Below are positions 9,980 through 64,000 of a stretch of 64,000 nt of DNA, piece by piece. Source of the stretch: Haliotis cracherodii (lineage: Eukaryota); NCBI RefSeq assembly GCF_022045235.1, contig NW_027266319.1:55862001-55926000 (forward strand), given 5' to 3'. The translations under genes and the position numbers were made by a program. Under the pieces are notes generated by a model. It had not been told where the DNA came from and did not search any database. It saw nothing but the letters and a program-made list of their open reading frames with translations. The number at the start of each line of letters is the position of its first letter. Position 1 is the first letter of the stretch.

Positions 9980-11368
9980 GGGGGTTCAACTGGAGATCTT
10001 GAGCGGGAGGAAGACCCTCTCCGTTGAATTGGTGGAGATGGGGTGACTTCCATATCTAGAGGTTCAAAGGGGTTATGAACCTCCAGAGGGACTGTCAATG
10101 GTAAAGGCACCTCGCAGTGTTTCAGGGCCTTTGATTCTTTTTTCTTTTGTTGTTTTTTTCCTTTTCTTGTCATGCTTACATTATGTAGCATTGCAGTAAT
10201 AGTTTCAGGTTCAGGTTCAGGTTCAGGTGCAGATCGTGGCCGAGTTTCTGTAGTTTGTGAAGCTGTTGACGATGAAACAGTGGTCTTGTCAGTATTAACT
10301 GGAAATAAAATGGTCTGTTCGTCTGAGACCCGTTTGGCATGAAGCATCAACTTTGAGTGGAGACAAGGAGACTGCAGCAGAGTAATTCAGCCTAGAAGTG
10401 GAAGTAGGTGACTCTTGGTCTAAAAGCTTTTTAGCATCTGTGAAGGAAATGTCATTATTGTATTTGATTTTTAGAATTTTTGTTTGTCTCACATAACAGG
10501 GGCACGATTTAAATGTGGACATGTGAGCACCGTTGCAGTTTGCACATTTGATGGCATCTGTGCAGTCTGTGCTGTCATGAGACTGGCTGCAGCGGGAGCA
10601 AACAGGTGAGTTTCGACAAGATTTAGCACCATGTCCAAATTGTTGGCATTTGAAACACCGGAGTGGATTTGGTATATATACATCCACCCCAATGTTGAAA
10701 TACCCCGCTTTGATAGACGATGGAAGCTTTGCGAGAGCAAACGTGAAAAGATATGTATTTGTTTTTACGAAGGAGTCACCATCTTTCCTTGTGAATCTCT
10801 TCACAGAAGTCACACCCTGATTTTTCAGTTCCGTTGCAATCTCCTCCTCAGACATGTCGGAAAGGCATTTAGCACGATCACGTACAATACCTCGACATGA
10901 ATTCAGAGTCTTGTGCACTGAGACAACAATCTCAGTATTTGCAAAGTGATGAGCTTGGAGTAGATTTAGAGACTGTTGTCTCCGTGCACATTCCACAAGC
11001 AAGGAGCCGGAACGGAGACGAGTAACATTGATCACATTTCCACAGATACCTTCTATGGATTTGGAAACTACAAAGGGGTTGATTTTGAGGGGTACACCAT
11101 CAACTCCTTCTACAACAAGAAAACGGGGCCAAGAATCAACAATATGTGCAGACTCTTCATCAGAAGAAGTTGCATTATTTGTGTCAATATGACGTCTTTT
11201 TGTTTTTGATCGAGAACCAGTGGACATGGGGGTAGCCATGATGAAAGAAAGATATTCGACACCCCTGCTCCCCACCCGCCATGGAGTGTCAACAAGGACA
11301 GTGTTGTAGTGGTAACCGACTACAAACACCAGGGTTACAAGGGTGCTATACTCCAGCAAAAAGGACAC
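9976..11368 (-). pseudogene. LINE ORF1 gag-like nucleic-acid-binding protein (frameshifted)
   Basis: ORF 10295-11368 has PNPLRCFKCQQFGHGAKSC plus two more Cys/His knuckles; it continues in ORF 9976-10350. Confidence 0.85.
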
Positions 11369-37700: not shown

Positions 37701-38341
37701 AAACATCATATACCTTTCTCATCTCATGATGATATTATTTGAATATATTTTTTTTAAAACTGCAAAAGATGTCAGTGTAGAACAATGTGAACATACATAT
37801 GCTCATGTCATAAATCCTTTTGAGGAACTACCTTTGCTGGTAATGTTGTACGATTAAACAAACAAAAAACAAAACAAATACTGTATATCAGATATACTTG
37901 ATATAATATACATTTTGCTGATTATGTTGTACGATTGCAGATCAATATTATGTTGAACGAGATGGTGGCAGTGAACACATTAGAAATCAGATACAAGCAT
38001 TACATATTGGATCACCTGTTGTCTGATATCACACCTGTAAAGACGTCTTTAATGAGCAAGACACAACAAAGGTGATTGTTATAATTATTTATTGAAACTA
38101 TTGACTTGTGGGAACACTATTCAGTAATACATTCTCGAAATCGCCTTCAAAGTGCGATGCCAGTGTCTCTTCAATAGAGTGATCTACAAAAGAAATACAT
38201 CAAATCATATGATCTTGGCATATTTGACATGAAATTATTTCTGAAGCATACATTTTCAGATACAGTTATGTTGAACGGATGATGGTTTCTACTGTATAAA
38301 ACGGATCATTGCAGTAAGATTTGCTCCACCTTACATTTGAC

Positions 38342-40557
38342 TCACTGCTCCAAGTTGTTGATGCTCCTTGCGAACTCTTCCAAACTCACGCTTGAGTCTC
38401 CTAAATGGAGAAAGGTTGTTGCAGTCAGTCAGAATAAATGTTCAGGAGTCAGATTTATTCGGGAAAAGGGTCCACATTACCCATGAGCGTCAAAACAAAT
38501 ACAAACACTTGACAAATAATTACATTATTTTAAACATTTCATTTGTATAAATGAAGTTGAAGGCAAAAGCTCTTACCATTTTCATCTGAGAACGAAAGGA
38601 GCTCCATGGCCGATCGTCTGTCCATTAGCGTCTCAGCTTCGGATAGGTCAATTGTGCCGTCCATGTTTGTATCAAGGTTATCCACATTACGTTTGCCTTG
38701 AATGAAAATAGTCATGTTTGGAAAGATACAAAATGAAAGAACACGAATGCATTTTCGGTTAAGGAATATGAGATAGTGGTCACTTTTAATCAGGCTATGA
38801 GTATTGATATCAAATGAACATATTTATATTTATCATATAATGGGTAGGTTTCTCGTCGGGATAAAGCCAACGGATAAAAACGATATCCGTTGGGGTCATA
38901 TGCGGATAGAGATGCAAATATCAAAGGTCAAGTAGGGACTACTTTCAGTGTTTATAAACAAACATGGCGTCGCACTTGTCATTCGGCGATCGAGTCAGAA
39001 TTAACCATCGTGAATCTGGATAAACTACAGGGATTTTAAAAAAACAGTCTTATATACTGAAAGTCAGTGTCGAACTGTGACGTAACTAAGGCATTTTATA
39101 GGTTTGGGCAACTTTGGAGATATAAATTTCGAAACAATTTTGCGAGGGCACAAGGCCTAGCCAAGCGGGATCAGAAGCCATATCTGTGCTTGTAGACCTC
39201 TGCGGCTTGAAACCTTTTCCACAAATAAAATAGTTGGGTTTAGGCAAAATATGTATGAATCGTTACCTTGTTTCGTTTTGGCGCTGTGTATACATCTGAC
39301 TACACTTCTTAACGTTATGACAGAACAGGCCGACTGTGAACAATCACTGGCCGTGACGTCTCATAGACTAGGGTGAGAGTAGCTTCCCTTTGACAAAGGG
39401 CAGTTACTCTAGCGGACAGACCGATGGATTGTCGCGAAAGGCAATTAAAAACAATTGTTGTTTTGCGTATATGTTGCTTCGCCACTGTATAAGAAACAGA
39501 TTTCAGTTTCAACTATATTGGCTTCTGTCACTGTCCGACTGACACATCACCTACCCTGTGACGTAATAAATATTAATGCGCGCATACCAGGAAAACTCGC
39601 AATGTTTAGGTAATGTTTGTGAGTGAGGGGAAGCGATTTTAAAGCACAGAATTGAAGAATGACATTATATGATAAAGAGGTTATCACGCTTGTGTGTTTA
39701 GGGATGGTAAATATCCTGTATTAGGAATAAACACTATGTATTTAGCTCGCCAAGCCTCGCTAAATACAATGTATATTCCTAATGCAGGATATTTACCATC
39801 CCCAAACACACTCGCGTGATAACCTCTATACATCTACAGTAACATTCCAAAACATATACTTGTTTCCATTTCAAATCGTCATCGTATATAGCTCTTCGGC
39901 TGGCTGACTAACATTTACATCAAAACAAATAGCGAACACCATTCTGTCTCATTCTGTAGTGCTTAATGACATGATCACATTTTCATTATGTTCGTTCTCT
40001 AGAATAGACTAGTCCATGTAATATTTTCATACATTCAAAAACAATGTTCGGTGTCCGTTTTCGTTCAGCAATATTCCAGGTAATATAACAGTTGGACTTA
40101 AATAACTGGGTGTGGCACAGACAATCCAGTGACTTATATCATGAGCATCGGTCTACACAACTGCATGATTATAGAAAGCATCTTGTCGGTTACAATTTTT
40201 ACACTGAAAGCAGAGTTGGCCTTTTAGGCATTTAATTTATTACTTTCATTTGAACCTGATGTAAAAGAGAGACGTTAATGTACTTGATACATCACCGATT
40301 TGGTCCTACTACAGCCGCTCATTGTTCTATAACTTAAACCGTAACTCCAGTACAGTTTGGGAAAATAGAAGATACTGTATGTCAGGCACTTAATGAAGTA
40401 CTCTTTGACTTCGCTCACCCAACAACACCCTGGCTCCAATCTTTGCTATTGTGCCAACTGTGCGCCATCTAACGAACCGTCGTCTCCGTCGTCCCCAGGC
40501 ATCAGACTGAGGGATGGAGACTATGGCCACAAGCAGGAGGACAAGGAACAAACGCAT
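38342..40557 (-). CDS. Secreted cationic peptide / EF-hand precursor, copy 1
   Basis: Exons 40557-40419, 38696-38577, 38400-38342 with intact splice sites. Protein same as copy 2 (K39). The intron carries a ~1-kb insertion. Confidence 0.86.
38829..39828. mobile_element. ~1-kb hairpin/inner-IR insertion in the peptide-gene intron (also 49093-50103)
   Basis: Absent from copies 2, 4 and 5 (empty site AACATATTTATA|TACATCTACAG in copies 2 and 4). IR 38829-38842 / 39663-39676. Palindrome 39676-39827. Confidence 0.8.
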
Positions 40558-42127
40558 CTTGGGATGTATTCTGCAGTGAAAATAAATTCTTTTAGCGAGT
40601 GAGCGAGTTGGGTTTAACGCAGCTATTAACAGTTATATCACGGCGTTTCAGCTTAATATGGGAGGGAAGGCCGCAGTGATGCAGGTTTTAGACGTTTACC
40701 ACTTCGGCGAAACCCACGAGCACGGGTATGGTGCTTACAAACTTAGAAACATAACCGGGGTGAACCGGGATTCCAACCCACAATCTGGCGTGCCCAAGGA
40801 ACGCAACTCAGCACCGCGAATTGCGGCGCCTTAGACGACAGAGCCCCCCGTGCCCCACTGAATTGTTTTAAGAAGCCGCATTCTCATGTGGGTGTGATTA
40901 TTGTTGCTGATTGCCTTATGAAACGTTGATTGCTTAAGATGTAATGGATTTGACGACTGACTATCATTACAAACAATTAAATCCTCAGTTAAATCCACAT
41001 TTTGTAACCAATGCCAACTGAAATGATAAGTTACACGTAAACTAATCAGACAGATAGTATTACTCACCAGGAGGACACGAGACAGGTCACAGTTGTTATG
41101 AATGTCATGTCCCTGGTATTTATACATTCTTTCCATTCATCAACCCGTGAAGTGAATCTGTTGCCAAAATATGTTAAGTGCCTGTTTGACAGAAACGTGC
41201 AAATGTAAATATGAAAAGAGATAAGTATCTACTTAGTCCACACCTCTTAATTGTCCTCTTTACGAGGGCTGTGTGTGAAGTGTATTTGTGTGTGATATCT
41301 ATTTTTTTAAATTGTTTGAGAATATTTAAAAGAAACTTATCACACCTCCATGTCAGAATATTCAGATCTAATTGGTTCATGTGATACTGATAAAATTCTA
41401 TGTATTTCCAGTGGGAGGGAAATACATTTCTGAGTGGGAAAATATATCCCATATACCCCGACATGAAAAAAACAGGCTGCACGTGTATTTATGAGCGAGG
41501 CCATATATATTCCACCCTGCTACGAAGCACAAAGCTGCACATTGTTTACGAGTCAAAGAATGACACGAGAGACATCACTAGTTACCCTTAGCTCATTCGA
41601 GCAGTGGTTTTCTATCTGTTTTCAATTTGTTTTAATTTTTAATCGCTGTGGCAGTATCACACGGGGTATATGTGAATTTGTGCGTCCCACGTTAGGTTTT
41701 AAACCACGAGCTGGATACTGCTACAATTTCTTATATTTGTGTACCAGAGGTGTATATGGCCATCTCTGAGAAAAATATATTTTCCATTCAGCAAACACTG
41801 GAAGCCTTCAATTTGTAGATCCAAAATAAAAGAAACCAAAACATTTGCATGTTTATAGAAAGCATCTTGTCGGTTACAATTTTTACACTGAAAGCACAGT
41901 TGTATGTAAACTTGTAGACTTAAATATTCTCAAACAATTTTTTTTAAAAATAAATTTCACACACAAATACACTTCACACACAGCCCTCGTAAAGAGGACA
42001 ATTAGGAGGTGTGGACTAAGTAGATACTTATCTCTTTTCATATTTACATTTGCACGTTTCTGTCAAACAGGCACTTAACATATTTTGGCAACAGATTCAC
42101 TTCACGGGTTGATGAATGGAAAGAATG

Positions 42128-42190
42128 TATAAATACCAGGGACACGACATTCATAACAACTGTGACCTGTCTCGTGTCCTTCTGGTAAGT
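42128..42190 (+). promoter_or_regulatory. TATA box and short non-coding first exon of the peptide gene (copy 2)
   Basis: TATAAATA at 42128-42135, then a GTAAGT donor at 42185-42190 and an acceptor at 42690 just upstream of the ATG. Equivalent TATA boxes at 41117-41124(-), 51393-51400(-), 52392-52399(+), 58753-58760(-). Confidence 0.55.
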
Positions 42191-42703
42191 AATACTTTAG
42201 GCACTATCTGTCTGATTAGTTTATGTGTAACTTATCATTTCAGTTGGCATTGGTTACAAAATGTGGATTTAACTGAGGATTTAATTGTTTGTAATGATAG
42301 TCAGTCGTCAAATCAATTACATCTTAAGCAATCAGCGTTTCATAAGGCAATCAGCAACAATATTCACACCCACATGAGAATGCGGCTTCTTAAAACAATT
42401 CAGTGGGGCACGGGGAGCTCAGTCGTCTAAGGTGCCGCAATTCGCGGTGCTGAGTTGCGTTCCTTGGGCACGCCAGATTGTGGGTTGGAATCCCGGTTCA
42501 CCCCGATTATGTTTCTAAGTTTGTAAGCACCATACCCGTGCTCGTGGGTTTCGCCGAAGTGGTAAACGTCTAAAACCTGCATCACTGCGGCCTTCCCTCC
42601 CATATTAAGCTGAAACGTCGTGATATAACTGTTAATAGCTGCGTTAAACCCAACTCGCTCACTCGCTAAAAGAATTTATTTTCACTGCAGAATACATCCC
42701 AAG

Positions 42704-43812
42704 ATGCGTTTGTTCCTTGTCCTCCTGCTTGTGGCCATAGTCTCCATCCCTCAGTCTGATGCCTGGGGACGACGGAGACGACGGTTCGTTAGATGGCGCA
42801 CAGTTGGCACAATAGCAAAGATTGGAGCCAGGGTGTTGTTGGGTGAGTGAAGCCAAAGAGTACTTCATTAAGTGCCTGACATGCAGTATCTTCTATTTTC
42901 CCAAACTGTACTGGAGTTACGGTTTAAGTTATAGAACAATGAGCGGCTGTAGTAGGACCAAATCGATGATGTATCAAGTACATTAACGTCTCTCTTTTAC
43001 ATCAGGTTCAAATGAAAGTAATAAATTAAATGCCTAAAAGGCCAACTCTGCTTTCAGTGTAAAAATTGTAACCGACAAGATGCTTTCTATAATCATGCAG
43101 TTGTGTAGACCGATGCTCATGATATAAGTTACTGGATTGTCTGTGCCACACCCAGTTATTTAAGGACCACTGTCGTTAAGCACTACAGAATGAGACAAGA
43201 TGTTGTTCGTTATTTGTTTTGATGTAAATCTAAGTCAGCCAGCCGAAGAGCTATATACATGTACGATGACGATTTGAAATGGAAACGTGTATATGTTTTG
43301 GAATGTTACTGTAGATGTATATAAATATGTTCATTTGATATCAATACTCATAGCCTGATTAAAAGTGACCACTATCTCATATTCCTTAACCGAAAATGCA
43401 TTCGTGTTCTTTATTTTGTATCTTTCCAAACATGACTATTTTCATTCAAGGCAAACGTAATGTGGATAACCTTGATACAAACATGGACGGCACAATTGAC
43501 CTGTCCGAAGCTGAGACGCTAATGGACAGACGATCGGCCATGGAGCTCCTTTCGTTCTCAGATGAAAATGGTAAGAGCTTTTGCCTTCAACTTCATTGAT
43601 ACAAATGAAATGTTTATTACTTTTAAAATAATGTAATTATTTGTCAAAGGTTTGTATTTTTTTACTCTCATGGGTAATGTGGACCCTTTTCCCGAATAAA
43701 TCTGACTCCTGAACATTTATTCTGACTGACTGCAACAACCTTTCTCCATTTAGGAGACTCAAGCGTGAGTTTGGAAGAGTTCGCAAGGAGCATCAACAAC
43801 TTGGAGCAGTGA
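42704..43812 (+). CDS. Secreted cationic peptide / EF-hand precursor, copy 2 (105 aa; putative antimicrobial-peptide precursor)
   Basis: Manual splice of coding exons 42704-42842, 43451-43570, 43754-43812 (GT-AG, phase 1/1). Translation: MRLFLVLLLVAIVSIPQSDA|WGRRRRRFVRWRTVGTIAKIGARVLL|GKR|NVDNLDTNMDGTIDLSEAETLMDRRSAMELLSFSDENGDSSVSLEEFARSINNLEQ*. Acceptor cag ends at 42690 just before the ATG. AATAAA at 44061. The function is inferred. Confidence 0.88.
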
Positions 43813-44810
43813 GTCAAATGTAAGGTGGAGCAAATCTTACTGCAATGATTCGTTTTATACAGTAGAAACCGTCATCCGTTCAACATAACTGTATCTGAAA
43901 ATGTATGCTTCAGCAATAATTTCATGTCAAATATGCCAAGATCATATGATTTGATGTATTTCTTTTGTAGATCACTCCATTGAAGAGACACTGGCATCGC
44001 ACTTTGAAGGCGATTTCGAGGATGTATTCCTGAATAGTGTTCCCACAAGTCAATAGTTTCAATAAATAAGTATAACAATCACCTTTGTTGTGTCTTGCTC
44101 ATTAAAGACGTCTTTACAGGTGTCATTTCAGACAACAGGTGATCCAATATGTAATGCTTGTATCTGATTTCTAATGTGTTCACTGCCACCATCTCGTTCA
44201 ACATAATATTGATCTGCAATCGTACACCAACATAATCAGCAAAATGTATATTATATCAAGTATATCTGATATACAATAGTTGTTTTGTTTGTTGTTTGTT
44301 TAATCGTACAACATTACCAGCAAAGGTAGTTCCTCAAAAGGAGTTATGACATTAGCATATGTATGTTCACATTGTTCTACACTGACATCTTTTGCAGTTT
44401 TTAAAAAAATATATTCAAATAATATCATCATGAGATGAGAAAGGTATATGATGTTTAATTGTTTGTTTGTTGTTGAACGGCGCACTCAGCAATATTCCAG
44501 CTATATGACGGCGGTCTGTAAATAATCGAGTATGGACCAGACAATCCATTGATTAATATCATGAAAATAATTCCTCGCAATTGGTATTCGATGACATGCA
44601 TCAACCAAGTCAGCGAGCCTAACCACCCGATCCCGTTAGTCGCTTCTTACGACAAACATGGTCGCCTTATGGTTTGCTGAAGACCTATTCTATCACGGAT
44701 CTTCACGGCTCGTTATGTTAAGCGAGTGAGTGAGATAGTTTAATGTTAACGTCACATCGACAATACACTACTTCAGTCATATCATGACGACATATAGTTA
44801 TACATTCCTA

Positions 44811-44812
44811 AC

Positions 44813-44894
<82 letters not shown>
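44811..44894 (+). repeat. (CA)n microsatellite (mirror (TG)n at 47548-47612)
   Basis: Directly visible; length differs among amplicon units. Confidence 0.9.
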
Positions 44895-44898
<4 letters not shown>

Positions 44899-47544
44899 CA
44901 GTGATGGACAGTATCATAAGTAGATTATCACAGTTTCAAATTAAATCAAGTTGAGAGCATGTAAAAGACAACAACAACACAAAAAAACGGACAAGGAACC
45001 GTAGGGACGATACTTCTGCCACCTGCATGGTTCCCCAGCAGAATTGACACTATCCCTTCAGCTGCTGGCAAGTGTAGTCAGTTTAATCCACCAGTTAAAA
45101 CTAACAAATATACTACACTTATAAATGTGACAGTTTAAATTTACTTTGAAAGATGTGGAACGTATGTACCCTCTCAGGGGGACACTGATATCAGATTCTT
45201 TATTCTCCATAGACCACCGACGGTGGTACAAGAGCATACTTAAAGTACAGAGATAAATATAATATGTACATCAAGACGGCTGTGTGCATTTAGAGTTAGC
45301 ATTCAAGGTGTTTAATACAAATAATACATATACATTATGCATGTGGAACGTATGTACCCTATCAGGGGGACACTGATATCACTGTACTTGGATTCAACCA
45401 CAAACAATCTCAGTTGCGAATTTGAAAACATGTTTTTAAAAAAATATTAACAAAAATATTTCAAATAATTCTATATCCTTTAAAAGCCAATATTTAAACG
45501 AGAATTAATTCTACGAAAAAGATCTTTAATAGATGATGATTTGAAACATTGATCTTTCATCACAAGGGATGCAGAATGGAGGGTCCTCACCTTTCAATAA
45601 ATGTTCACGACTTTAGCGTCAATGGCCAATACGACATCATCGGTTTTTGACCTTTCCAAATCTGGACTGACTAACCAAAATCGGTGTAACCGATGGTTGG
45701 TGTAATTTCATGTAGCGTATTTACACCTACTCGGGTGTCCCTCTTCCTTTGCATGAGGGGTCACGGGTGGCCCAGTCGTCTAAGGCGCCGCTATTCCATT
45801 GAACACACCAGAAACCTATGATTGTGGGTTCGAATCCCAGTTCGCCCCGATTATGTTTCTAGGTTTGTCAGCACCATACCCGTCTCGTGGGTTTCACCGA
45901 AGTGGTAAACTTTTGAAACCTGCATCACTTTGGACTTTCCTCCCACATTAAGCTGACAGGCCGTGATATAACTGGAATATTGTTAAAAGCGGCGTTAAAC
46001 CCAACTCACTCACTCACTCCTTTGCATTAGATCATTGATGTAACATCTAATTACAAGCTAATAATCACTGTCACAGATTTGTTGAGTGTTTTTGCAGCCG
46101 TATCGGCCATTGAAACATGGCTGGGTAACCACCAAAAGACGATGTCATATTGGCCAGTAGCTATTAAAACACGCCATATCATTAAAACACGCAAAAATGT
46201 CGACCGAGAGTGGATGTTTACATGACACATTTTGTAATAGCCTGAAGGCACGAAGGAGAATGGGAAAAGGTATAAGCTGTTTATGTTCAGATTGGTTCTT
46301 GATATATTTTAGTGCTGTTAAAATGACATTTGCTTCTACTGTGAATATGGAACTGTTATATGGTAATCTTGAAGATAGTGTTCTAGATCCAATGATAGTG
46401 ACATTAGCAACTGTGCCACCATCCTTGGATCCATCTGTAAGAAGAAAACAGCGTTATCCCTATCCCCCGCCATTATAATTATATTTGTTCATTTAGTAGT
46501 GGATATAACCAACGCAAAGTATCAATATGCATGTTTCAAAGTAGAGTAGAGGAATGCCTAGAAACATAATCGGGGCGAACTGCGATTCGAACCCACAATC
46601 ATAGGTTTCTGGTGTGTTCATGGGACACGACTCTGCACAGCGACTCGCGGCGCCTTAGACGACTGGGCCATCCGTGACCCCTCATGCAAAAGAAGAGGGA
46701 CACCCGAATAGGTGTAAATACGCTACATGAAATTACACCAACCATCGGTTACACCGATTTTTGTTAGTCAGTCCAGATTTGGAAAGGTCAAAAACCGATG
46801 ATGTCGTATTGGCCATTGACGCTAAAGTCATGAACATTTATTGAAAGGTGAGGACCCTCCATTCTGCATCCCTTGTGATGAAAGATCAATGTTTCAAATC
46901 ATCATCTATTAAAGATCTTTTTCGTAGAATTAATTCTCGTTTAAATATTGGCTTTTAAAGGATATAGAATTATTTGAAATATTTTTGTTAATATTTTTTT
47001 AAAAACATGTTTTCAAATTCGCAACTGAGATTGTTTGTGGTTGAATCCAAGTACAGTGATATCAGTGTCCCCCTGATAGGGTACATACGTTCCACATGCA
47101 TAATGTATATGTATTATTTGTATTTAACACCTTGAATGCTAACTCTAAATGCACACAGCCGTCTTGATGTACACATTATATTTATCTCTGTACTTTAAGT
47201 ATGCTCTTGTACCACCGTCGGTGGTCTATGGAGAATAAAGAATCTGATATCAGTGTCCCCCTGAGAGGGTATATACGTTCCACATCTTTCAAAGTAAATT
47301 TAAACTGTCACATTTATAAGCGTAGTATATTTGTTAGTTTTAACTGGTGGATTAAACTTACTACACTTGCCAGCAGCTGAAGGGATAGTGTCAATTCTGC
47401 TTGGGAACCGTGCAGGTGGCAGAAGTATCGTCCCTAAGGTTCCTTGTCCGTTTTTTATATTGTGTTGTTGTTTTCTTTTACATGCTCTCAACTTGATTTA
47501 ATTTGAAACTGTGATAATCTAGTTATGATACTGTCCATCACTGA

Positions 47545-47615
<71 letters not shown>

Positions 47616-48605
47616 GGAATGTATAACTATATGTCGTCATGATATGGCTGAAATAGTGTATTGTCGATGTGACATTGAACTATCTCACTCACTCGCTTAA
47701 CATAACGAGCCGTGAAGATCCGTGATAGAATAGGTCTTCAGCAAACCATAAGGCGACCATGCTTGTCGTAAGAAGCGACTAACGGGATCGGGTGGTTAGG
47801 CTCGCTGACTTGGTTGATGCATGTCATCGAATACCAATTGCGAGGAATTATTTTCATGATATTAATCACTGGATTGTCTGGTCCATACTCGATTATTTAC
47901 AGACCGCCGTCACATAGCTGGAATATTGCTGAGTGCGGCGTTCAACAACAAACAAACACTCAAACATCATATACCTTTCTCATCTCATGATGATATTATT
48001 TGAATATATTTTTTTAAAAACTGCAAAAGATGTCAGTGTAGAACAATGTGAACATACATATGCTCATGTCATATCTCCTTTTGAGGAACTACCTTTGCTG
48101 GTAATGTTGTACGATTAAACAAACAAAAAACAAAACAAATACTGTATATCAGATATACTTGATATAATATACAATTTGCTGATTATGTTGTTGTACGATT
48201 GCAGATCAATATTATGTTGAACGAGATGGTGGTAGTGAACACATTAGAAATCAGATACAAGCATAACATATTGGATCACCTGTTGTCTGAAATGACACCT
48301 GTAAAGACGTCTTTAATGAGCAAGACACAACAAAGGTGATTGTAATAATTATTTATTGAAACTATTGACTTGTGGGAACACTATTCAGGAATACATCCTC
48401 GAAATCGCCATCAAAGTGCGATGCCAGTGTCTCTTCAATAGAGTGATCTACAAAAGAAATACATCAAATCATATGATCTTGGCATAGTTGACATGAAATT
48501 ATTGCTGAAGCATACATTTTCAGATACAGTTATGTTGAACGGATGACGGTTTCTACTGTATAAAACGGATCATTGCAGTAAGATTTGCTCCACCTTACAT
48601 TTGAC

Positions 48606-50833
48606 TCACTGCTCCAAGTTGTTGATGCTCCTTGCGAACTCTTCCAAACTCACGCTTGAGTCTCCTAAATGGAGAAAGGTTGTTGCAGTCAGTCAGAATA
48701 TATGTTCAGGAGTCAGATTTATTCGGGCAAAGGGTCCACATTACCCATGAGCGTCAAAACAAATACAAACACTTGACAAATAATTACATTATTTTAAACA
48801 TTTCATTTGTATAAATGAAGTTGAAGGCAAAAGCTCTTACCATTTTCATCTGAGAACGAAAGGAGCTCCATGGCCGATCGTCTGTCCATTAGCGTCTCAG
48901 CTTCGGATAGGTCAATTGTCCCGTCCATGTTTGTATCAAGGTTATCCACATTACGTTTGCCTTGAATGAAAATAGTCATGTTTGGAAAGATACAAAATGA
49001 AAGAACACGAATGCATTTTCGGTTAAGGAATATGAGATAGTGGTCACTTTTAATCAGGCTATGAGTATTGATATCAAATGAACATATTTATATTTATCAT
49101 ATGGGTAGGTTTCTCGTCGGGATAAAGCCAACGGATAAAAACGATATCCGTTGGGGTCATATGCGGATAGAGATGCAAATATCAAAGGTCAAGTAGGGAC
49201 TACTTTCAGTGTTTATAAACAAACATGGCGTCGCACTTGTCATTCGGCGATCGAGTCAGAATTAACCATCGTGAATCTGGATAAACTACAGGGATAACTG
49301 ATACAATTATTTTAAAAAAACAGTCTTATATACTGAAAGTCAGTGTCGAACTGTGTCGTAACTAAGGCATTTTATAGGTTTGGGCAACTTTGGAGATATA
49401 AATTTCGAAACAATTTTGCGAGGGCACAAGGCCTAGCCAAGCGGGATCAGAAGCCATATCTGTGCTTGTAGACCTCTGCGGCTTGAAACCTTTTCCACAA
49501 ATAAAATAGTTGGGTTTAGGCAAAATATGTATGAATCGTTACCTTGTTTCGTGTTGGCGCTGTGTATACATCTGACTACACTTCTTAACGTTATGACAGA
49601 ACAGGCCGACTGTGAACAATCACTGGCCGTGACGTCTCATAGACTAGGGTGAGAGTAGCTTCCCTTTGACAAAGGGCAGTTACTCTAGCGGACAGACCGA
49701 TGGATTGTCGCGAAAGGCAATTAAAAACAATTGTTGTTTTGCGTATATGTTGCTTCGCCACTGTATAAGAAACAGATTTCAGTTTCAACTATATTGGCTT
49801 CTGTCACTGTCCGACTGACACATCACCTACCCTGTGACGTAATAAATATTAATGCGCGCATACCAGGAAAACTCGCAATGTTTAGGTAATGTTTGTGAGT
49901 GAGGGGAAGCGATTTTAAAGCACAGAATTGAAGAATGACATTATATGATAAAGAGGTTATCACGCTTGTGTGTTTAGGGATGGTAAATATCCTGTATTAG
50001 GAATAAACACTATGTATTTAGCTCGCCAAGGCTCGCTAAATACAATGTATATTCCTAATGCAGGATATTTACCATCCCCAAACACACTCGCGTGATAACC
50101 TCTATACATCTTCAGTAACATTCCAAAACATATACTTGTTTCCATTTCAAATCGTCATCCTATATAGCTCTTCGGCTGGCTGACTAACATTTACATCAAA
50201 ACAAATAGCGAACACCATTCTGTCTCATTCTGTAGTGCTTAATGACATGATCACATTTTCATTATGTTCGTTTTCTAGATTAGACTAGTCCATGTAATAT
50301 TTTCATACATTCAAAAACAATGTTCGGTGTCCGTTTTCGTTCAGCAATATTCCAGGTAATATAACAGTTGGACTTAAATAACTGGGTGTGGCACAGACAA
50401 TCCAGTGACTTATATCATGAGCATCGGTCTACACAACTGCATGATTATAGAAAGCATCTTGTCGGTTACAATTTTTACACTGAAAGCAGAGTTGGCCTTT
50501 TAGGCATTTAATTTATTACTTTCATTTGAACCTGATGTAAAAGAGAGACGTTAATGTACTTGATACATCACCAATTTGGTCCTACTACAGCCGCTCATTG
50601 TTCTATAACTTAAACCGTAACTCCAGTACAGTTTGGGAAAATAGAGGATACTGTATGTCAGGCACTTAATGAAGTACTCTTTGGCTTCGCTCACCCAACA
50701 ACACCCTGGCTCCAATCCGTGCTATTGTGCCAACTGTGCGCCATCTAACGAACCGTCGTCTCCGTCGTCCCCAAGCATCAGACTGAGGGATGGAGACTAT
50801 GGCCACAAGCAGGAGGACAAGGAACAAACGCAT
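48606..50833 (-). CDS. Secreted cationic peptide / EF-hand precursor, copy 3
   Basis: Exons 50833-50695, 48960-48841, 48664-48606; intact. K39R (AAG>CGG). Same ~1-kb intron insertion as copy 1. Confidence 0.86.
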
Positions 50834-52967: not shown

Positions 52968-54077
52968 ATGCGTTTGTTCCTTGTCCTCCTGCTTGTGGCC
53001 ATAGTCTCCATCCCTCAGTCTGATGCCTGGGGACGACGGAGACGACGGTTCGTTAGATGGCGCACAGTTGGCACAATAGCACGGATTGGAGCCAGGGTGT
53101 TGTTGGGTGAGTGAAGCCAAAGAGTACTTCATTAAGTGCCTGACATACAGTATCTTCTATTTTCCCAAACTGTACTGGAGTTACGGATTAAGTTATAGAA
53201 CAATGAGCGGCTGTAGTAGGACCAAATCGGTGATGTATCAAGTACATTAACGTCTCTCTTTTACATCAGGTTCAAATGAAAGTAATAAATTAAATGCCTA
53301 AAAGGCCAACTCTGCTTTCAGTGTAAAAATTGTAACCGACAAGATGCTTTCTATAATCATGCAGTTGTGTAGACCGATGCTCATGATATAAGTTACTGGA
53401 TTGTCTGTGCCACACCCAGTTATTTAAGGACCACTGTCGTTAAGCACTACAGAATGAGACAAGATGTTGTTCGTTATTTGTTTTGATGTAAATCTTAGTC
53501 AGCCAGCCGAAGAGCTATATACATGTACGATGACGATTTGAAATGGAAACGTGTATATGTTTTGGAATGTTACTGTAGATGTATATAAATATGTTCATTT
53601 GATATCAATACTCATAGCCTGATTAAAAGTGACCACTATCTCATATTCCTTAACCGAAAATGCATTCGTGTTCTTTCATTTTGTATCTTTCCAAACATGA
53701 CTATTTTCATTCAAGGCAAACGTAATGTGGATAACCTTGATACAAACATGGACGGCACAATTGACCTGTCCGAAGCTGAGACGCTAATGGACAGACGATC
53801 GGCCATGGAGCTCCTTTCGTTCTCAGATGAAAATGGTAAGAGCTTTTGCCTACAACTTCATTGATACAAATGAAATGTTTATTACTTTTAAAATAATGTA
53901 ATTATTTGTCAAGTTTTTGTATTTTTTTACTCTCATGGGTAATGTGGACCCTTTTCCCGAATAAATCTGACTCCTGAACATTTATTCTGACTGACTGCAA
54001 CAACCTTTCTCCATTTAGGAGACTCAAGCGTGAGTTTGGAAGAGTTCGCAAGGAACATCAACAACTTGGAGCAGTGA
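52968..54077 (+). CDS. Secreted cationic peptide / EF-hand precursor, copy 4
   Basis: Exons 52968-53106, 53716-53835, 54019-54077; intact. K39R, and C-terminal FARNINNLEQ (S>N). Confidence 0.86.
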
Positions 54078-54678
54078 GTCAAATGTAAGGTGGAGCAAAT
54101 CTTACTGCAATGATCCGTTTTATACAGTAGAAACCGTCATCCGTTCAACATAACTGTATCTGAAAATGTATGCTTCAGCAATAATTTCATGTCAAATATG
54201 CCAAGATCATATGATTTGATGTATTTCTTTTGTAGATCACTCCATTGAAGAGACACTGGCATCGCACTTTGAAGGCGATTTCGAGGATGTATTCCTGAAT
54301 AGTGTTCCCACAAGTCAATAGTTTCAATAAATAATTATAACAATCACCTTTGTTGTGTCTTGCTCATTAAAGACGTCTTTACAGGTGTCATTTCAGACAA
54401 CAGGTGATCCAATATGTAATGCTTGTATCTGATTTCTAATGTGTTCACTGCCACCATCTCGTTCAACATAATATTGATCTGCAATCGTACAACAACATAA
54501 TCAGCAAAATGTATATTATATCAAGTATATCTGATATACAATATTTGTTTTGTTTGTTGTTTGTTTAATCGTACAACATTACCAGCAAAGGTAGTTCCTC
54601 AAAAGGAGTTATGACATTAGCATATGTATGTTCACATTGTTCTACACTGACATCTTTTGCAGTTTTTAAAAAAATATA

Positions 54679-54819
54679 NNNNNNNNNNNNNNNNNNNNNN
54701 NNNNNNNNNNNNNNNNNNNNNNNNNNNNNNNNNNNNNNNNNNNNNNNNNNNNNNNNNNNNNNNNNNNNNNNNNNNNNNNNNNNNNNNNNNNNNNNNNNNN
54801 NNNNNNNNNNNNNNNNNNN
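54679..54819. other. Assembly gap (others at 18766-18907 and 55858-55990)
   Basis: Runs of N. Confidence 1.
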
Positions 54820-56968
54820 TCATAAGTAGATTATCACAGTTTCAAATTAAATCAAGTTGAGAGCATGTAAAAGACAACAACAACACAATATAAAAAAACG
54901 GACAAGGAACCGTAGGGACGATACTTCTGCCACCTGCACGGTTCCCCAGCAGATTTGACACTATCCCTTCAGCTGCTGGCAAGTGTAGTCAGTTTAATCC
55001 ACCAGTTAAAACTAACAAATATACTACGCTTATAAATGTGATAGTTTAAATTTACTTTAAAAGAGGTGGAACGTATATATCCTCTCAGGGGGACACTGAT
55101 ATCAGATTCTTTATTCTCCATAGACCACCGACGGTGGTACAACAGCATACATAAAGTACAGAGATAAATATAATATGTACATCAAGACGGCTGTGTGCAT
55201 TTAGAGTTAGCATTCAAGGTGTTAAATACAAATAATACATATACATTATGCATGTGGAACGTATGTACCCTATCAGGGGGACACTGATATCACTGTACTT
55301 GGATTCAACCACAAACAATCTCTATTTTTTTAAAAACATGTTTTCAAATTCGCAACTGAGATTGTTTGTGGTTGAATCCAAGTACAGTGATATCAGTGTC
55401 CCCCTGAGAGGGTACATACGTTCCACATGCATAATGTATATGTATTATTTGTATTTAACACCTTGAATGCTAACTCTAAATGCACACAGCCGTCTTGATG
55501 TACATATTATATTTATCTCTGTACTTTAAGTATGCTCTTGTACCACCGTCGGTGGTCTATGGAGAATAAAGAATCTGATATCAGTGTCCCCCTGAGAGGG
55601 TACATACGTTCCACATCTTTCAAAGTAAATTTAAACTGTCACATTTATAAGTGTAGTATATTTGTTAGTTTTAACTGGTGGATTAAACTGACTACACTTG
55701 CCAGCAGCTGAAGGGATAGTGTCAATTCTGCTGGGGAACCGTGCAGGTGGCAGAAGTATCGTCCCTACGGTTCCTTGTCCGTTTTTTATATTGTGTTGTT
55801 GTTGTCTTTTACATGCTCTCAACTTGATTTAATTTGAAACTGTGATAATCTACTTATNNNNNNNNNNNNNNNNNNNNNNNNNNNNNNNNNNNNNNNNNNN
55901 NNNNNNNNNNNNNNNNNNNNNNNNNNNNNNNNNNNNNNNNNNNNNNNNNNNNNNNNNNNNNNNNNNNNNNNNNNNNNNNNNNNNNNNNNNTTGTCATGAT
56001 ATGACTGAAATAGTGTATTGTCGATGTGACGTTAACATTGAACTATCTCACTCACTCGCTTAACATAACGAGCCGTGAAGATCCGGGATAGAATAGGTCT
56101 TCAGCAAACCATAAGGCGACCATGCTTGTCGTAAGAAGCGACTAACGGGATCGGGTGGTTAGGCTTGCTGACTTGGTTGATGCATGTCATCGAATACCAA
56201 TTGCGAGGAATTATTTTCATGATATTAATCACTGGATTGTCTGGTCCATACTCGATTATTTACAGACCGCCGTCACATAGCTGGAATATTGCTGAGTGCG
56301 GCGTTCAACAACAAACAAACACTTAAATATCATATACCTTTCTCATCTCATGATGATATTATTTGAATATATTTTTTTTTAAACTGCAAAAGATGTCAGT
56401 GTAGAACAATGTGAACATACATATGCTCATGTCATAACTCCTTTTGAGGAACTACCTTTGCTGGTATTGTTGTACGATTAAACAAACAACAGACAAAACA
56501 AATATTGTATATGCGATATACTTGATATAATATACATTTTGCTGATTATGTTGTTGTACGATTGCAGATCAATATTATGTTGAACGAGATGGTGGCAGTG
56601 AACACATTAGAAATCAGATACAAGCATTACATATTGGATCACCTGTTGTCTGAAATGACACCTGTAAAGACGTCTTTAATGAGCAAGACACAACAAAGGT
56701 GATTGTTATAATTATTTATTGAAACTATTGACTTGTGGGAACACTATTCAGGAATACATCCTCGAAATCGCCTTCAAAGTGCGATGCCAGTGTCTCTTCA
56801 ATAGAGTGATCTACAAAAGAAATACATCAAATCATATGATCTTGGCATATTTGACATGAAATTATTGCTGAAGCATACATTTTCAGATACAGTTATGTTG
56901 AACGGATGATGGTTTCTACTGTATAAAACGGATCATTGCAGTAAGATTTGCTCCACCTTACATTTGAC

Positions 56969-58184
56969 TCACTGCTCCAAGTTGTTGATGCTCCTTGCGA
57001 ACTCTTCCAAACTCACGCTTGAGTCTCCTAAATGGAGAAAGGTTGTTGCAGTCAGTCAAAATAAATGTTCAGGAGTCAGATTTATTCGGGAAAAGGGTCC
57101 ACATTACCCATGAGCGACAAAACAAATACAAACACTTGACAAATAATTACCTTAATTTGAACATTTCATTTGTATAAATGAAGTTGAAGGCAAAAGCTCT
57201 TACCATTTTCATCTAAGAACGAAAGGAGCTCCATGGCCGATCGTCTGTCCATTAGCGTCTCAGCTTCGGATAGGTCAATTGTGCCGTCCATGTTTGTATC
57301 AAGGTTATCCACATTACGTTTGCCTTGAATGAAAATAGTCATGTTTGGAAAGATACAAAATGAAAGAACACGAATGCATTTTCGGTTAAGGAATATGAGA
57401 TAGTGGTCACTTTTAATCAGGCTATGAGTATTGATATCAAATGAATATATTTATATACATCTACAGTAACATTCCAAAACATATACTCGTTTCCATTTCA
57501 AATCGTCATCGTATGTAGCTCTTCGGCTGGCTGTCTAAGATTTACATCAAAACAAATAACGAACAACATTCTGTCTCATTCTGTAGTGCTTAATGACATG
57601 ATCACATTTTCATTATGTTCGTTTTCTAGATTAGACTAGTCCATGTAATATTTTCATACATTCAAAAACAATGTTCGGTGTCCGTTTTCGTTCAGCAATA
57701 TTCCAGGTAATATAACAGTGGGACTTAAATAACTGGGTGTGGCACAGACAATCCAGTGACTTATATCATGAGCATCGGTCTACACAACTGCATGATTATA
57801 GAAAGCATCTTGTCGGTTACAATTTTTACACTGAAAGCAGAGTTGGCCTTTTAGGCATTTAATTTATTACTTTCATATGAACCTGATGTAAAAGAAAGAC
57901 GTTAATGTACTTGATACATCATCGATTTGGTCCTATCACAGCCGCTCATTGTTCTATAACTTAAACCGTAACTCCATTACAGTTTGGGAAAATAGAAGAA
58001 ACTGTATGTCAGGCACTTAATGAAGTACTCTTTGACTTCGCTCACCCAACAACACCCTGGCTCCAATCTTTGCTATTGTGCCAACTGTGCGCCATCTAAC
58101 GAACCGTCGTCTCCGTCGTCCCCAAGCATCAGACTGAGGGATGGAGACTATGGCCACAAGCAGGAGGACAAGGAACAAACGCAT
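56969..58184 (-). CDS. Secreted cationic peptide / EF-hand precursor, copy 5
   Basis: Exons 58184-58046, 57323-57204, 57027-56969; intact. K39, and LSFLDEN (S>L before EF-hand 2). Confidence 0.86.
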
Positions 58185-59974: not shown

Positions 59975-62900
59975 AAGCCTGCACGTCAGTCTACACGTCA
60001 GCCTTCACAAAGTACTGAACATGCAAATATTCAAAAAAAGGAAAGGAAACGACAAAACAAAAAACAAACTCAAAGAAGCGCATCTCCTCTTGAGGTACCT
60101 CTTACTAACTCGTTTGGACCTCTGGATATGGAGGTGACCCTGTCTTCCGATGACAGAGGTAGAAATTCTTCTTCCTCACGACCACGTGAGAGGTCACCTA
60201 TTGAACCACCGTGACTCCATCAAATAACCTACTCCAATGGAATTGCAAAGGATTTTAAACCGTCTGCTTTATGTCTACAGGAGACATACCTTAAAAGTAC
60301 TGACAAATTTGATATTAGGCAGTATAACTGTCATCATTCATATTCTCCTCCAGGCGACAAAGCAACTGGAGGGTCATCTATTTTGGTGAGACAGGGCGTG
60401 ATTCACAGCCCTGTTTCTATCAATTCAAATCTTCAAGCTGTTGCTGTTCGTTTAACTTTGAACATTGTCTTTACTCTGTGTTCCTTGTATATTCCTCCAT
60501 CCACTATGCTTCAACAAACAGATCTTCAAAATCTATATGATCAGCTACCCAAGCCATGCATCATCGTGGGTGATTTGAATGGACACAACCCTTTATGGGG
60601 AAGTGTTACCACAAACAATAAAGGGAAAATACTTGAGGAATTCATTTCAGATAATAATTTATGTATCTGTAATGATGATTCAAACACTTATTTACATCCA
60701 GCCACTGGAACGTACTCATCTCTTGATCTGTCTCTCAACGATTCAAATCTATTTAATGAATTTGACTGGTCGGTCCATGATGACCTCTGCGGAAGTGATC
60801 ACTTTCCCACCATTCTTAAAGCTGTGAACCCGAATCCTGAAAACTCGACATCCAGGTGGAATTTTAAGAAGGCCGATTGGTCATTATATGAAATATTGTG
60901 CACTGCAAAATTAACCCCTCATCATTTTCAAAATGTTGAAGATCCGATTCAATTGTTTTCAGATCAGCTCAATGAAATAGCTGATCAAACAATTCCAAAG
61001 TCCTCTGCAATTCCTCATATTCGCAAACCGTGGTTTACCTACGAATGTAAACAGGCACGGAAGTGTAGGAAGAAAGCGGAAAAGTACTTTCGCCGACATC
61101 CCACAGTTCATAATTTAGATCAAGTAAAAATTACAAATACAAAAGCCAGGCGGGCTTATAAACAAAATAAGTGTCAATCTTGGAGGACCTACGTCTCCAA
61201 AATAAATTCCCGTACTCCTATATCCAAAGTATGGAACATGATCCAAAAAATTAAAGGCAAAGGATCAAAATCTTCTGTTCACCGTTTGAAGGAAGGTGAT
61301 CAGTTATTAACTGATAAATCAGATATTGCCAATAAACTTGGTGAAACATTGGCAAAACATTCGTCATCGTCTAATTATGCCCCTGAATTCATAAAATATC
61401 AGAAACAACAGGAAAAGAAAAATGTTAATTTTAACTCTGATAACGGGGAAGACTATAATGAAGTGTTTTCCTTCCATGAGCTACATACAGCCCTTGGGCA
61501 AGCTCATGATACAGCGGCTGGTGCTGATAATATTCACTATCAGCTCCTGAAACATTTGCCTGATTCATGTCTAGAAACACTATTAGATATATTTGACCAC
61601 ATATGGACGTCGGGGAATTTTCCTCCTTCTTGGCATAATGCCATTGTAGTCCCTATCCCAAAGCCGGGTCGGGATCATACAGATCCATCCAATTACCGTC
61701 CTATATCTTTAACCAGTTGTGTCTGTAAAACCATGGAGCGAATGGTAAATAATAGATTGGTTTGGTTCTTAGAAACCAATAACCTACTAACTAATATTCA
61801 ATGTGGTTTCCGCAAAAATCGAAGTACTATAGATCATTTAGTACGATTGGAATCGTTTGTGAAAAATGCTCTTGTTAACAAACAACATGCTGTGTCAATT
61901 TTTTTCGATCTTGAGAAAGCTTATGACACTACCTTGAAGCATGGCAATTTAAAAGATTTACACGAGTTTGGTCTGAGAGGCCGCTTACCACATTTTATAT
62001 CACAGTTTTTAGCGGGCAGGCAATTTCAAGTCCGAGTGGGTTCAACCCTGTCTGACCATTATAATCAGGATCAGGGTGTCCCACAAGGAAGTATATTGTC
62101 AGTTACTCTATTTAGTATTAAAATCAATAGTCTTTCAAAGGTTTTAAATGATGCAGTAGATGGGTCACTTTTCGTAGATGATTTTAATATATCTTGTCGT
62201 GGTAAAAATATGCACACTATTGAGAGACAGCTACACTTATGCCTCAATAAAATACATAAATGGTGTCTAGAGAATGGGTTTAAGTTCTCTAAAGTCAAAA
62301 CAAACTGTATCCATTTTTGCCGCAAATATAAACCGCATACGGACCCAGAACTGTTTTTGGCTGGTTTTCCTATTAAAGTTGTCAAGGAAGCCAAGTTCTT
62401 GGGTATTATATTTGATAATCATCTAACATTTTTACCACATATAATATGGGGAGGGGATCGGACAACACTCCTTCATTTATATCGTTCTCTCATCCGTTCC
62501 AAACTCGATTATGGCTCCATTATTTATGGTGGTGCCTGTAAAAGCAACTTAAAATTATTGGATTCAGTACATCATCAAGGACTGAGGCTATGTCTTGGTG
62601 CCTTTAGAACTTCACCAGTTGACAGTTTATATGTAGAGGCAGACGAGCCATCTCTTAAACAACGTCGAATTAAACTTTCATTGCAATATGTGACTAAATT
62701 ATACTCAAATCCGTCGAATCCAGCATACGACTGTGTGTTTAATCCCATGTATGAAAATCTATTCCAGTCAAAACCAAAGCTTGTCACCCCTCTAGGGTTC
62801 AGAATTAAGCCACATATTACCGCAGCTACTATTGATCTTTCTACTATCTCACCATACCGGTTACTGTCTACACCTCCTTGGCAACTAGTCAAACCTTAGG

Positions 62901-64000
62901 TAGACCTGACACTAACTACCCTAAAAAAAGCTGATACAAACAAGTTGATTTATCAACAAGAATATGCCCAGTTGCGGTCAAAATATGATACCCATCGCTC
63001 TATTTTTACTGATGGCTCCAAGGATGGTGGCAAAATGTCAAGTGCTACTGTCATTGGATCTAAAAGGGTGTCTTCTAGAATCCCAGATAATAGCTCTATT
63101 TTTACAGCTGAGGCCAATGCTATTCTTATAGCTTTGGACTTCATTCAAAACCAATCATCTCAACAGTTCATCATCTTTTCTGATTCCTTGTCATGCTTTC
63201 AGGCAATACATAATTGTTCTTCAAATCATCCGTTAATACGTGACATTTTAGAATTGAATAATGTTCTCGCCACTGCCCAATACGACATCGTCTTTTGCTG
63301 GTTGCCCAATCATGTTGGCATCGCTGGTAACACTATGGCTGATACTGCTGCAAAGGCAGCCCTCACCAAATCAGTAACACCACTTCTTTTACCATACAGT
63401 GATTACAAGCCAGTAATTCGATGCTACATCAATGATCTGATGCAAAAGAAGTGGAACACCCGAGTGGGTATCAACAAACTTATTGTTATAAAACCATCAA
63501 TAGGGTATATCTACTTGGGTTGCTCTTCAAGACATGATGAAGTTGTTTTGCAACGATGTCGTATTGGACACAGTCGATATACCCACGAGTATCTTTTAAA
63601 AGGTGAGGATCCCCCGTTCTGTGTCCCTTGTGATGAGCGAATCACAGTCAAGCATGTTTTGCTTGACTGTTGATTTTTCTCTCACAAGGGATAAATATTA
63701 TCATTCAACATCTTTAAAGGATCTTTTTTATGATATCAGTGCTCATTTAATTCTCGGTTTTTTAAAAGAAATACTATTATTTGATAAATTTTGAATTGTT
63801 TTAGAATAGTTGGATATTTTTGTCAACTGAGATGTATGTAGGCAGTGCCACTGAGGGGGTTAAAGCAGTGTAAAATTAATGTCCCCTGACAGTGGCACGT
63901 GAGTTCATATATATTGAAGTAATTAATATCAACTAGTGTTTTAATTCCTTGATTGTGTTTTCTTTTTTAATATTGGTTAATATTTCATACAACCACTCGT
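59975..64000 (+). mobile_element. 5'-truncated I/Nimb-like LINE with stops and frameshifts
   Basis: ORF1 tail (RERSPIEPP vs RSRSPVEPP). ORF2 60383-62899 (APE+RT) and 62945-63673 (RNase H). Clearly related to the 5918-11906 element. Confidence 0.9.

Follow-up and report, generated by a model that had tools for sequence, protein, structure and literature searches.

What is a small, putatively secreted protein for when it joins, in one chain, an arginine-rich peptide, a peptide-processing site and a pair of calcium-binding loops? The question is raised by a gene whose coding exons lie between positions 42704 and 43812 of a stretch of 64,000 nucleotides from the black abalone, Haliotis cracherodii, which was analyzed as a whole and is called the window here (assembly GCF_022045235.1, contig NW_027266319.1, 55,862,001 to 55,926,000 of the forward strand; positions are counted from the first letter of the window unless a megabase locus is given). 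On the basis of sequence comparison we read its product, with a probability of about one half, as a host-defence prepropeptide with a Ca2+-binding propiece. A first-pass annotation, made from the letters of the DNA, had proposed an amidated antimicrobial peptide (AMP) followed by an acidic EF-hand pro-domain; what it observed is confirmed with corrections, and its interpretation as an AMP precursor is supported in part.

A spliced and heavily transcribed gene

The three coding exons (42704-42842, 43451-43570 and 43754-43812) have GT..AG borders and, translated exon by exon, join in frame into a protein of 105 amino acids. The chain starts with a signal of 20 residues that has a hydrophobic core and Ser-Asp-Ala (S-D-A) at positions -3 to -1, judged by the -3/-1 rule only, and continues with a peptide of 26 residues that contains eight Arg, one Lys and two Trp, and neither acidic residues nor Cys. 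Gly-Lys-Arg (G-K-R) follows, and then a tail of 56 residues with a net charge of -11 and two 12-residue loops carrying the canonical ligands at loop positions 1, 3, 5 and 12; the net charge of the whole precursor is about 0. On recomputation, the composition that had been given for signal, peptide (9 basic residues), processing site and tail holds. A glycine directly before a dibasic site and downstream of a putative signal, the mark by which amidated precursors are recognized, is thus found in the window gene.

Searches were made with each exon separately, and the full-length analyses were done on the database proteins that those searches returned. Exon 2 led to two RefSeq proteins of H. cracherodii, and the cluster they belong to comprises 13 sequences of H. 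cracherodii and H. rufescens, all of them named 'uncharacterized protein'. The RefSeq protein P0012 (XP_071081953 and others) is identical to the model exon by exon; the gene, which had been described as hidden, is therefore already modelled, in both species, under that name.

Contigs of public sequencing runs were compared over 42400-44400. Run identities are coded, X1 and X2 being guessed to be RNA and X17 being DNA-like, and contig depth is an imprecise gauge of expression level. Exon bins were 1e4-1.5e5 deep in X1 and X2 and intron bins 0-13 deep, except at one repeat (43070-43203), while in the DNA-like X17 exons and introns were evenly covered at ~370-660 (intron 1 at ~370-470). This repeat of intron 1 is high-copy: X17, the DNA-like run, covers it 2e5 deep and the RNA-like runs, in which the rest of the intron is silent, 1e4-2e4 deep.

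The joint 43570>43754, with GT..AG borders, was present in X1 (depth 25000), X2 (9631) and X6 (8.5). A joint from exon 1 to 43451 was found in an X1 contig, where the end of exon 1 is a variant shortened by one codon, and the loose ends of X2 contigs that reach 43450/43451 match the final 19-21 bases of exon 1 except for one base changed relative to the window; of the two junctions to be checked, 42842/43451 and 43570/43754, the second was thus seen directly and the first through variant exon-1 ends in X1 and X2. The in-frame splicing into 105 residues that had been predicted agrees with both the translation and these joints in RNA-like contigs. A third joint, 43819>43971 (GT..AG), was present in X1 and X2 (depth 7270) and removes an intron located in the 3' untranslated region (3'UTR), which one X2 contig retains. 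The three-exon account is hence right for the coding exons and had missed a fourth exon, which is 3'UTR. None of the splice joints was present in the DNA-like X17 contigs. X1 contigs begin at 42695, 27 nt past a TATA-like TAAAAG, and no upstream 5' exon was seen in the run contigs over the region compared. Our results show that this is a real, spliced and heavily transcribed gene.

A family conserved around a variable peptide

Thirteen Haliotis proteins from four species were aligned. Their signal is almost invariant, Trp follows the cleavage site and G-K-R is present in all 13, and the EF-hand pair is conserved, whereas the Arg-rich segment varies in sequence and in length (24-43 residues); averaged over pairs, identity falls from 1.00 at the site through 0.83 in the signal and 0.62 in the propiece to 0.42 in the peptide. 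A long subfamily (140-146 residues) has a longer peptide and an additional acidic tail, and its equivalent phase-1 intron splits a Gly codon located four codons upstream of the G-K-R glycine. An intron exactly in the amidation Gly codon, as had been pointed out, is consequently a trait of the subfamily of the window gene and not of the long one. Both share a modular plan, exon 1 coding for the signal with its variable peptide and exon 2 for the processing site together with the first EF-hand.

A family profile was built from the 13 Haliotis sequences, leaving out Pinctada fucata EFCBP, a pearl-oyster protein, and was searched against 1.84 billion representatives. It gave 212 matches; among the best 150 of these about 25 short proteins aligned end to end, placed in Haliotis, the vent snail Gigantopelta aegis (Neomphalina), the oyster Saccostrea echinata and P. 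fucata. The relatives in the last three share one layout, namely a signal, a Trp-initiated Arg-rich variable peptide, G-K-R and an EF-hand pair, so that the arrangement which the first-pass annotation had suggested looking for, a variable cationic peptide and G-K-R ahead of the EF-hand part, is present in gastropod as well as bivalve homologues. The peptides of the relatives have 22-45 residues and a charge of mostly +7 to +18, their propieces a charge of -8 to -22. In an alignment of 47 sequences Gly47 is kept in 36, Lys48 in 40 and Arg49 in 41; the loop-1 residues D55, D59 and E66 are present in all 47 and G60 in 45, and at the junction of S-D-A with the following Trp, Ala occupies -1 in 29/47 and Trp occupies +1 in 38/47.

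The same Haliotis-only profile matched P. fucata EFCBP (P0047, ABF48089) with E = 1.2e-9, over positions 3-122 of the query and 5-125 of the protein. EFCBP had been named as an alternative; it is a homologue with the full architecture and not merely a similar small EF-hand protein. Judged by these alignments the family is mollusc-wide, with Pinctada EFCBP as its sole named member. Matches in the ESM Atlas were all below 0.9 and serve as leads only.

Compared singly with Pfam EF-hand_1/_7, the propiece of the window gene stays under the curated cut-off (22.8 vs 25.4 bits). The family profile of the propiece, when compared with PDB, matched the lobes of calmodulin, CaBP1 and Entamoeba CaBP with E = 1e-10 to 2e-12, so the two EF-hand loops that had been described are real EF-hands by profile (E = 2e-12 to PDB EF-hand pairs), though sub-threshold in Pfam as a single sequence. 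Like a calmodulin-type pair, both loops have their ligands in the canonical positions; unlike calmodulin, the protein is predicted to be secreted and has a single pair, its loop starts lie 29 residues apart instead of 36, and loop 2 has Ser instead of Gly at its position 6. Because the Ca2+ ligands are invariant across two mollusc classes, the propiece is, on this comparison, selected for Ca2+ binding and not for charge alone. Structure predictions with 13 and then 47 aligned sequences had mean predicted local distance difference test (pLDDT) values of 59 and 56 and predicted template modelling (pTM) scores of 0.20-0.23, at which only helix positions are readable, and a predicted complex of residues 21-50 with residues 51-105 and two Ca2+ scored 0.02, which is no evidence in either direction.

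Where, then, does the protein change? Between H. cracherodii P0012 and H. rufescens P0010, 6 of the 26 peptide residues differ, all of them at 36-44, and none of the 79 others (Fisher p = 1.4e-4). Between the window gene and a paralogue at 53.86 Mb, the nonsynonymous divergence (dN, Nei-Gojobori) is 0.37 in the peptide and 0.033 in the exon-2 propiece, an 11-fold difference. By these comparisons the peptide segment is a place of focal hyperdivergence. Having the variable part exactly in the place of the mature peptide is a signature of host-defence precursors, and the AMP inference is therefore reasonable.

The gene has also been amplified. Within the window there are five complete four-exon copies in alternating orientation, whose proteins differ by 0-2 residues. 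In a genome-wide search exon 1 and exon 2 had 22 matches each at >=95% identity at C56:55.90-56.06 Mb, which makes an array of at least 22 near-identical copies in ~157 kb, 21 of the 22 having an intact open frame. Outside it the genome has at least 15 diverged paralogues, among them five copies at C56:53.86-53.90 Mb, five at 0.82-0.84 Mb and three at 2.35-2.37 Mb. The five copies in the window match one another at 97-99% in introns and spacers too; since introns are as similar as exons, this identity reflects recent amplification or gene conversion and not coding constraint, the evidence for which is the cross-species comparison and not the array copies. In the five-copy sister cluster (53.86-53.90 Mb), at C56:53857800-53860600, exon 2 is 90-92% identical to that of the window gene and exon 1 encodes a different, 22-residue Arg-rich peptide; a loose end in X1 joins this exon 1 to exon 2, so the sister cluster is transcribed as well.

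Host defence weighed against other roles

How could such a precursor work in defence? Transcription and splicing of four exons are seen in the RNA-like contigs and the layout is conserved; from there on we infer the steps. The protein would enter the endoplasmic reticulum and lose its signal after Ala20, as the -3/-1 rule and the conserved S-D-A junction before Trp suggest, and its EF-hand pair, with canonical and invariant ligands, would be loaded with Ca2+ in the secretory pathway. The conserved G-K-R predicts that a proprotein convertase cuts after Lys-Arg, that a carboxypeptidase trims the new end and that Gly47 is used by peptidylglycine alpha-amidating monooxygenase, leaving a peptide of 26 residues with a Leu-amide end. 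Once free, this Arg/Trp peptide would be membrane- or surface-active and act on microbial surfaces, a step to which its composition, the focal hypervariability and the amplification of the gene point. The propiece, which brings the precursor to a net charge of about 0, would, at low certainty, render the peptide harmless and soluble, perhaps by masking it, or direct it to granules; a further function outside the cell is conceivable. As one would expect of a mollusc, the genome contains genes with Cu2_monooxygen domains and with proprotein-convertase P-domains.

The layout has relatives among known molluscan AMP precursors. Mytimycins, the antifungal peptides of Mytilus, are likewise made from multigene precursors with a signal, a mature peptide, a dibasic site and an anionic EF-hand C-terminal extension, the function of which is unexplained (PMC8004829). 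The architecture with an EF-hand pro-domain, which the first-pass annotation did not know from any characterized AMP, thus has a precedent, as mytimycin precursors have a dibasic site and then the EF-hand extension (PMC8004829). Unlike the linear, Cys-free window peptide of 26 residues, the mature mytimycin has 54 residues with 12 Cys, and a Cys-rich segment was found in none of the five profile matches of 142-148 residues that were fetched from the best 150 of 212.

Myticalins and modiocalins also have a signal, a hypervariable Arg-rich linear peptide, a Gly with Lys-Arg for amidation and an anionic extension (PMC5577615, PMC12294457). As in the family studied here, in myticalins a conserved signal and extension surround a hypervariable core, a phase-1 intron lies near the processing site and the genes form multigene families with pseudogenes. 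Myticalins differ, however, in having another signal consensus, an unstructured extension, an intron after the dibasic site and not before it, and three exons that include a 5'UTR exon, and they are restricted to Mytilida. No myticalin was recognized among those of the best 150 of 212 matches whose names or sequences were examined. By analogy the window gene is myticalin-like in layout, and it is not shown to be a myticalin by sequence.

Several results weigh against a role in host defence. The best 18-residue helical moment of the window peptide is 0.36, compared with a shuffle mean of 0.47 (p = 0.73), so the amphipathic pattern that had been ascribed to it is no higher than in shuffles; significant amphipathic windows do exist in relatives (Gigantopelta, p = 0.002; Saccostrea, 0.001; the long Haliotis subfamily, 0.046), and the window peptide is built in polar blocks, a 12-residue Trp/Arg head being joined to a tail of small hydrophobic residues. 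Charge compensation between peptide and propiece, with a rho of 0.44 over 24 sequences, drops to 0.18 (p = 0.52) when one sequence per subgroup is taken. Between the window gene and the 53.86-Mb paralogue the synonymous divergence (dS) is 1.65 in the peptide and 0.18 in the propiece; because dS is raised there along with dN, we make no claim of positive selection or of a dN/dS above 1. The Cu2_monooxygen matches in the genome are indistinguishable from dopamine-beta-hydroxylase-like genes. Only five residues lie between Lys-Arg and loop 1, so a cleaved propiece would be without the entering helix of EF-hand 1, and the protein could act uncleaved. Finally EFCBP, the sole homologue that has been studied, has been connected in the literature with shell formation, and damage to the shell induces it (PMC3120837, citing Huang et al. 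2007).

These last two points bear on an alternative that we find improbable but worth keeping in view, in which the product, like EFCBP, stays whole and binds Ca2+ outside the cell where shell is formed or repaired; its cationic segment would anchor it to chitin, acidic matrix proteins or mineral, and its EF-hand pair would handle the Ca2+. EFCBP is a true homologue of one layout with the window protein, having a signal that ends in D-A, a Trp-initiated Arg/Trp-rich segment, G-K-R and two EF-hand loops, and it is described as a shell-formation protein that, according to the paper cited above, is up-regulated on shell damage. An 'EFCBP' transcript is highest at the postlarval stage in H. diversicolor (PMC3517415), larval shell proteomes contain small acidic EF-hand proteins (PMC6231486), the Ca2+ ligands are invariant, and the Lys-Arg site occupies the expected position of the EF-hand 1 entering helix. 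EFCBP differs from the window protein in having ~20 residues from Lys-Arg to loop 1 instead of 5 and another inter-loop region, with an identity of ~22-30%, and a multi-copy array is unreported for it. The induction by shell damage is, however, equally compatible with a wound or immune response, a matrix anchor is unlikely to be hypervariable beside a Gly and dibasic site conserved across classes, and dozens of near-identical copies, with differences between species restricted to the peptide, recall effector families. The literature on EFCBP, as far as covered (incompletely, the original EFCBP paper being outside), mentions neither processing nor an AMP reading, and no paper was found there that reads the EFCBP-type family as AMP or peptide precursors.

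Less probable again would be some other secreted effector that is not primarily antimicrobial, for example a mucus component with cytolytic or deterrent action, a pair of polycation and polyanion that adheres or coacervates, or a reproductive protein. Fast divergence of a peptide together with amplification is known too in toxin and reproductive gene families, and a precursor balanced between polycation and polyanion, at a net charge of about 0, could coacervate. Nevertheless, none of these roles has specific evidence, and the layout is nearest to that of known molluscan AMP precursors (PMC5577615, PMC8004829).

A bolder version of the host-defence reading, which we regard as speculative and rank below the two alternatives just given, holds that the family is an ancient molluscan defence system predating the gastropod-bivalve split, with the Ca2+-binding propiece as an active partner and EFCBP itself as an AMP precursor. 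Before cleavage, the C-terminal half of the peptide and G-K-R would stand in for the entering helix of EF-hand 1, and the convertase cut would free the peptide and change the Ca2+ site simultaneously. The induction of pearl-oyster EFCBP on shell damage would then be a response of wound immunity, and mytimycins would have taken up a comparable EF-hand module independently.

We consider it quite unlikely that the gene encodes the precursor of a signalling peptide (neuropeptide, hormone or pheromone), a hybrid of amidated peptide and EF-hand such as HCS2 of Helix lucorum, even if a signal with G-K-R is the classic signature of amidated neuropeptides. Receptors normally constrain such peptides, and here the peptide is the least conserved part; its charge (+9 to +18) and the presence of >35 gene copies also speak against signalling. 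HCS2 is a gastropod precursor that joins processed peptides and an EF-hand region (known by its title, 1998, ref. 88 in PMC8398477); unlike the window gene it codes for several short peptides and is confined to command neurons, and the two are likened by description only.

That the copies are transcribed without a functional protein, or that the assembly has wrongly multiplied one or a few genes into an array, is hardly credible: palindromic copies that are 97-99% identical, introns included, are indeed hard to assemble and exon 1 of one copy is interrupted by an in-frame TGA, but the intact frames in 21 of 22, the conservation of the protein across two molluscan classes, the several loci modelled in H. 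rufescens too and the abundant, correctly spliced contigs all contradict it.

The array, its surroundings and the meaning of the family

The features of the reported gene and of its neighbouring copies are collected in Table 1. The inverted repeats at both types of junction are 97-99% complementary, and the unit made of one head-to-head and one tail-to-tail junction recurs every 10.26 kb.

Table 1. Gene parts, array copies and palindromes in the window (positions within the 64,000 nucleotides).
Feature	Position	Strand	Description
TATA-like TAAAAG	42668-42673	+	putative core promoter, ~27 nt 5' of contig starts (~42695)
Exon 1	42704-42842	+	ATG start; GTGAGT donor follows
Signal peptide part of exon 1	42704-42763	+	20 residues, S-D-A end
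Variable cationic peptide part of exon 1	42764-42841	+	26 residues, charge +9; 42842 is base 1 of the Gly47 codon
Intron 1	42843-43450	+	608 nt, GT..AG, phase 1, splits the Gly47 codon
Exon 2	43451-43570	+	pyrimidine-rich tract with TTCAAG acceptor; GTAAGA donor
Lys48-Arg49	43453-43458		in exon 2
EF-hand loop 1	43474-43509		in exon 2
Inter-loop helices			in exon 2
EF-hand loop 2, start	43561-43570		in exon 2
Intron 2	43571-43753	+	183 nt, GT..AG, phase 1, splits Gly87 within EF-hand loop 2
Exon 3	43754-43819	+	ATTTAG acceptor; remainder of loop 2 to 43779, exiting helix, TGA 43810-43812, 7 nt of 3'UTR
Intron 3	43820-43970	+	151 nt, GT..AG, in the 3'UTR
Exon 4	43971-~44075	+	3'UTR only; AATAAA 44061-44066; RNA depth ends ~44075; conserved in 5/5 window copies
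Copy A	38079-40557	-	head-to-head with reported gene; identical protein; intron 1 of 1722 nt
Copy A exons	40557-40419, 38696-38577, 38400-38335, 38183-38079	-	
Copy B	42704-44075	+	reported gene
Copy C	48345-50833	-	tail-to-tail with reported gene; peptide K39R
Copy D	52968-54340	+	K39R, S99N
Copy E	56706-58184	-	S83L
Head-to-head palindrome	40088-43173		arms 40088-41058 and 42203-43173, 98% complementary; promoter, exon 1, start of intron 1
Tail-to-tail palindrome	43659-44788 and 47672-48759		

Runs of N occupy 18766-18907 (142), 54679-54819 (141) and 55858-55990 (133); as the second and third both fall between copies D and E, the spacing of the array is uncertain there. The tail-to-tail spacer between copies B and C holds mirrored (AC)n microsatellites at 44784-44954 and 47488-47640, which appear as Thr-His repeats in the list of open reading frames (ORFs).

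Not every copy or paralogue follows the same pattern. An array copy outside the window (C56:55928178-55928315) has an in-frame TGA in exon 1, and of the variant RefSeq proteins P0011 and P0001 one has Val in place of the amidation Gly47 and one is without a Leu before G-K-R. In P0159, a protein of H. cracherodii from another chromosome, the segment before G-K-R is hydrophobic and nearly uncharged; because this segment is non-cationic, the cationic-AMP pattern does not extend to every paralogue.

Just upstream of the reported gene, a stretch resembling a tRNA-derived short interspersed nuclear element (SINE) spans 42405-42670, with a box-A-like GAGCTCAGTCG and a box-B-like GGTTGGAATCCCGG, and ends ~25 nt before the TATA-like box. 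It is mirrored upstream of other copies (e.g. ~40590-40860), and its depth of 1e5-7e6 in every run marks it as very high-copy. Rfam gave no match over 40500-44200, the SINE-like stretch included. The array is flanked by copies of a retrotransposon without long terminal repeats (non-LTR) at 6476-9732 (-) and 60383-63673 (+), whose ORFs have endonuclease, reverse transcriptase (RVT_1, E = 1e-35 to 1e-38) and RNase H domains. Beside these ORFs lies an open frame of 357 residues at 10295-11368 (-), with no Pfam match.

Little is known of gastropod AMP families. Should the peptides prove active, the genes described here would form a large candidate AMP family in abalones, a vent snail, oysters and pearl oysters, and linear, cysteine-free AMPs are rare among the known molluscan ones (PMC12294457). 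Judged from the sequences, the product is probably a molluscan cationic-peptide precursor with an EF-hand pair as its anionic propiece, in a family spanning gastropods and bivalves. Should the host-defence reading be true, it would be a second, independent case of an AMP with an EF-hand propiece, the EF-hand of mytimycins would become a general and testable question, and EFCBP, which is cited as a biomineralisation protein, would deserve re-examination. Withering syndrome, a disease caused by bacteria, has made the black abalone an endangered species, and an amplified family of mucosal or haemocyte effectors would be of practical interest for abalone breeding and for conservation genetics.

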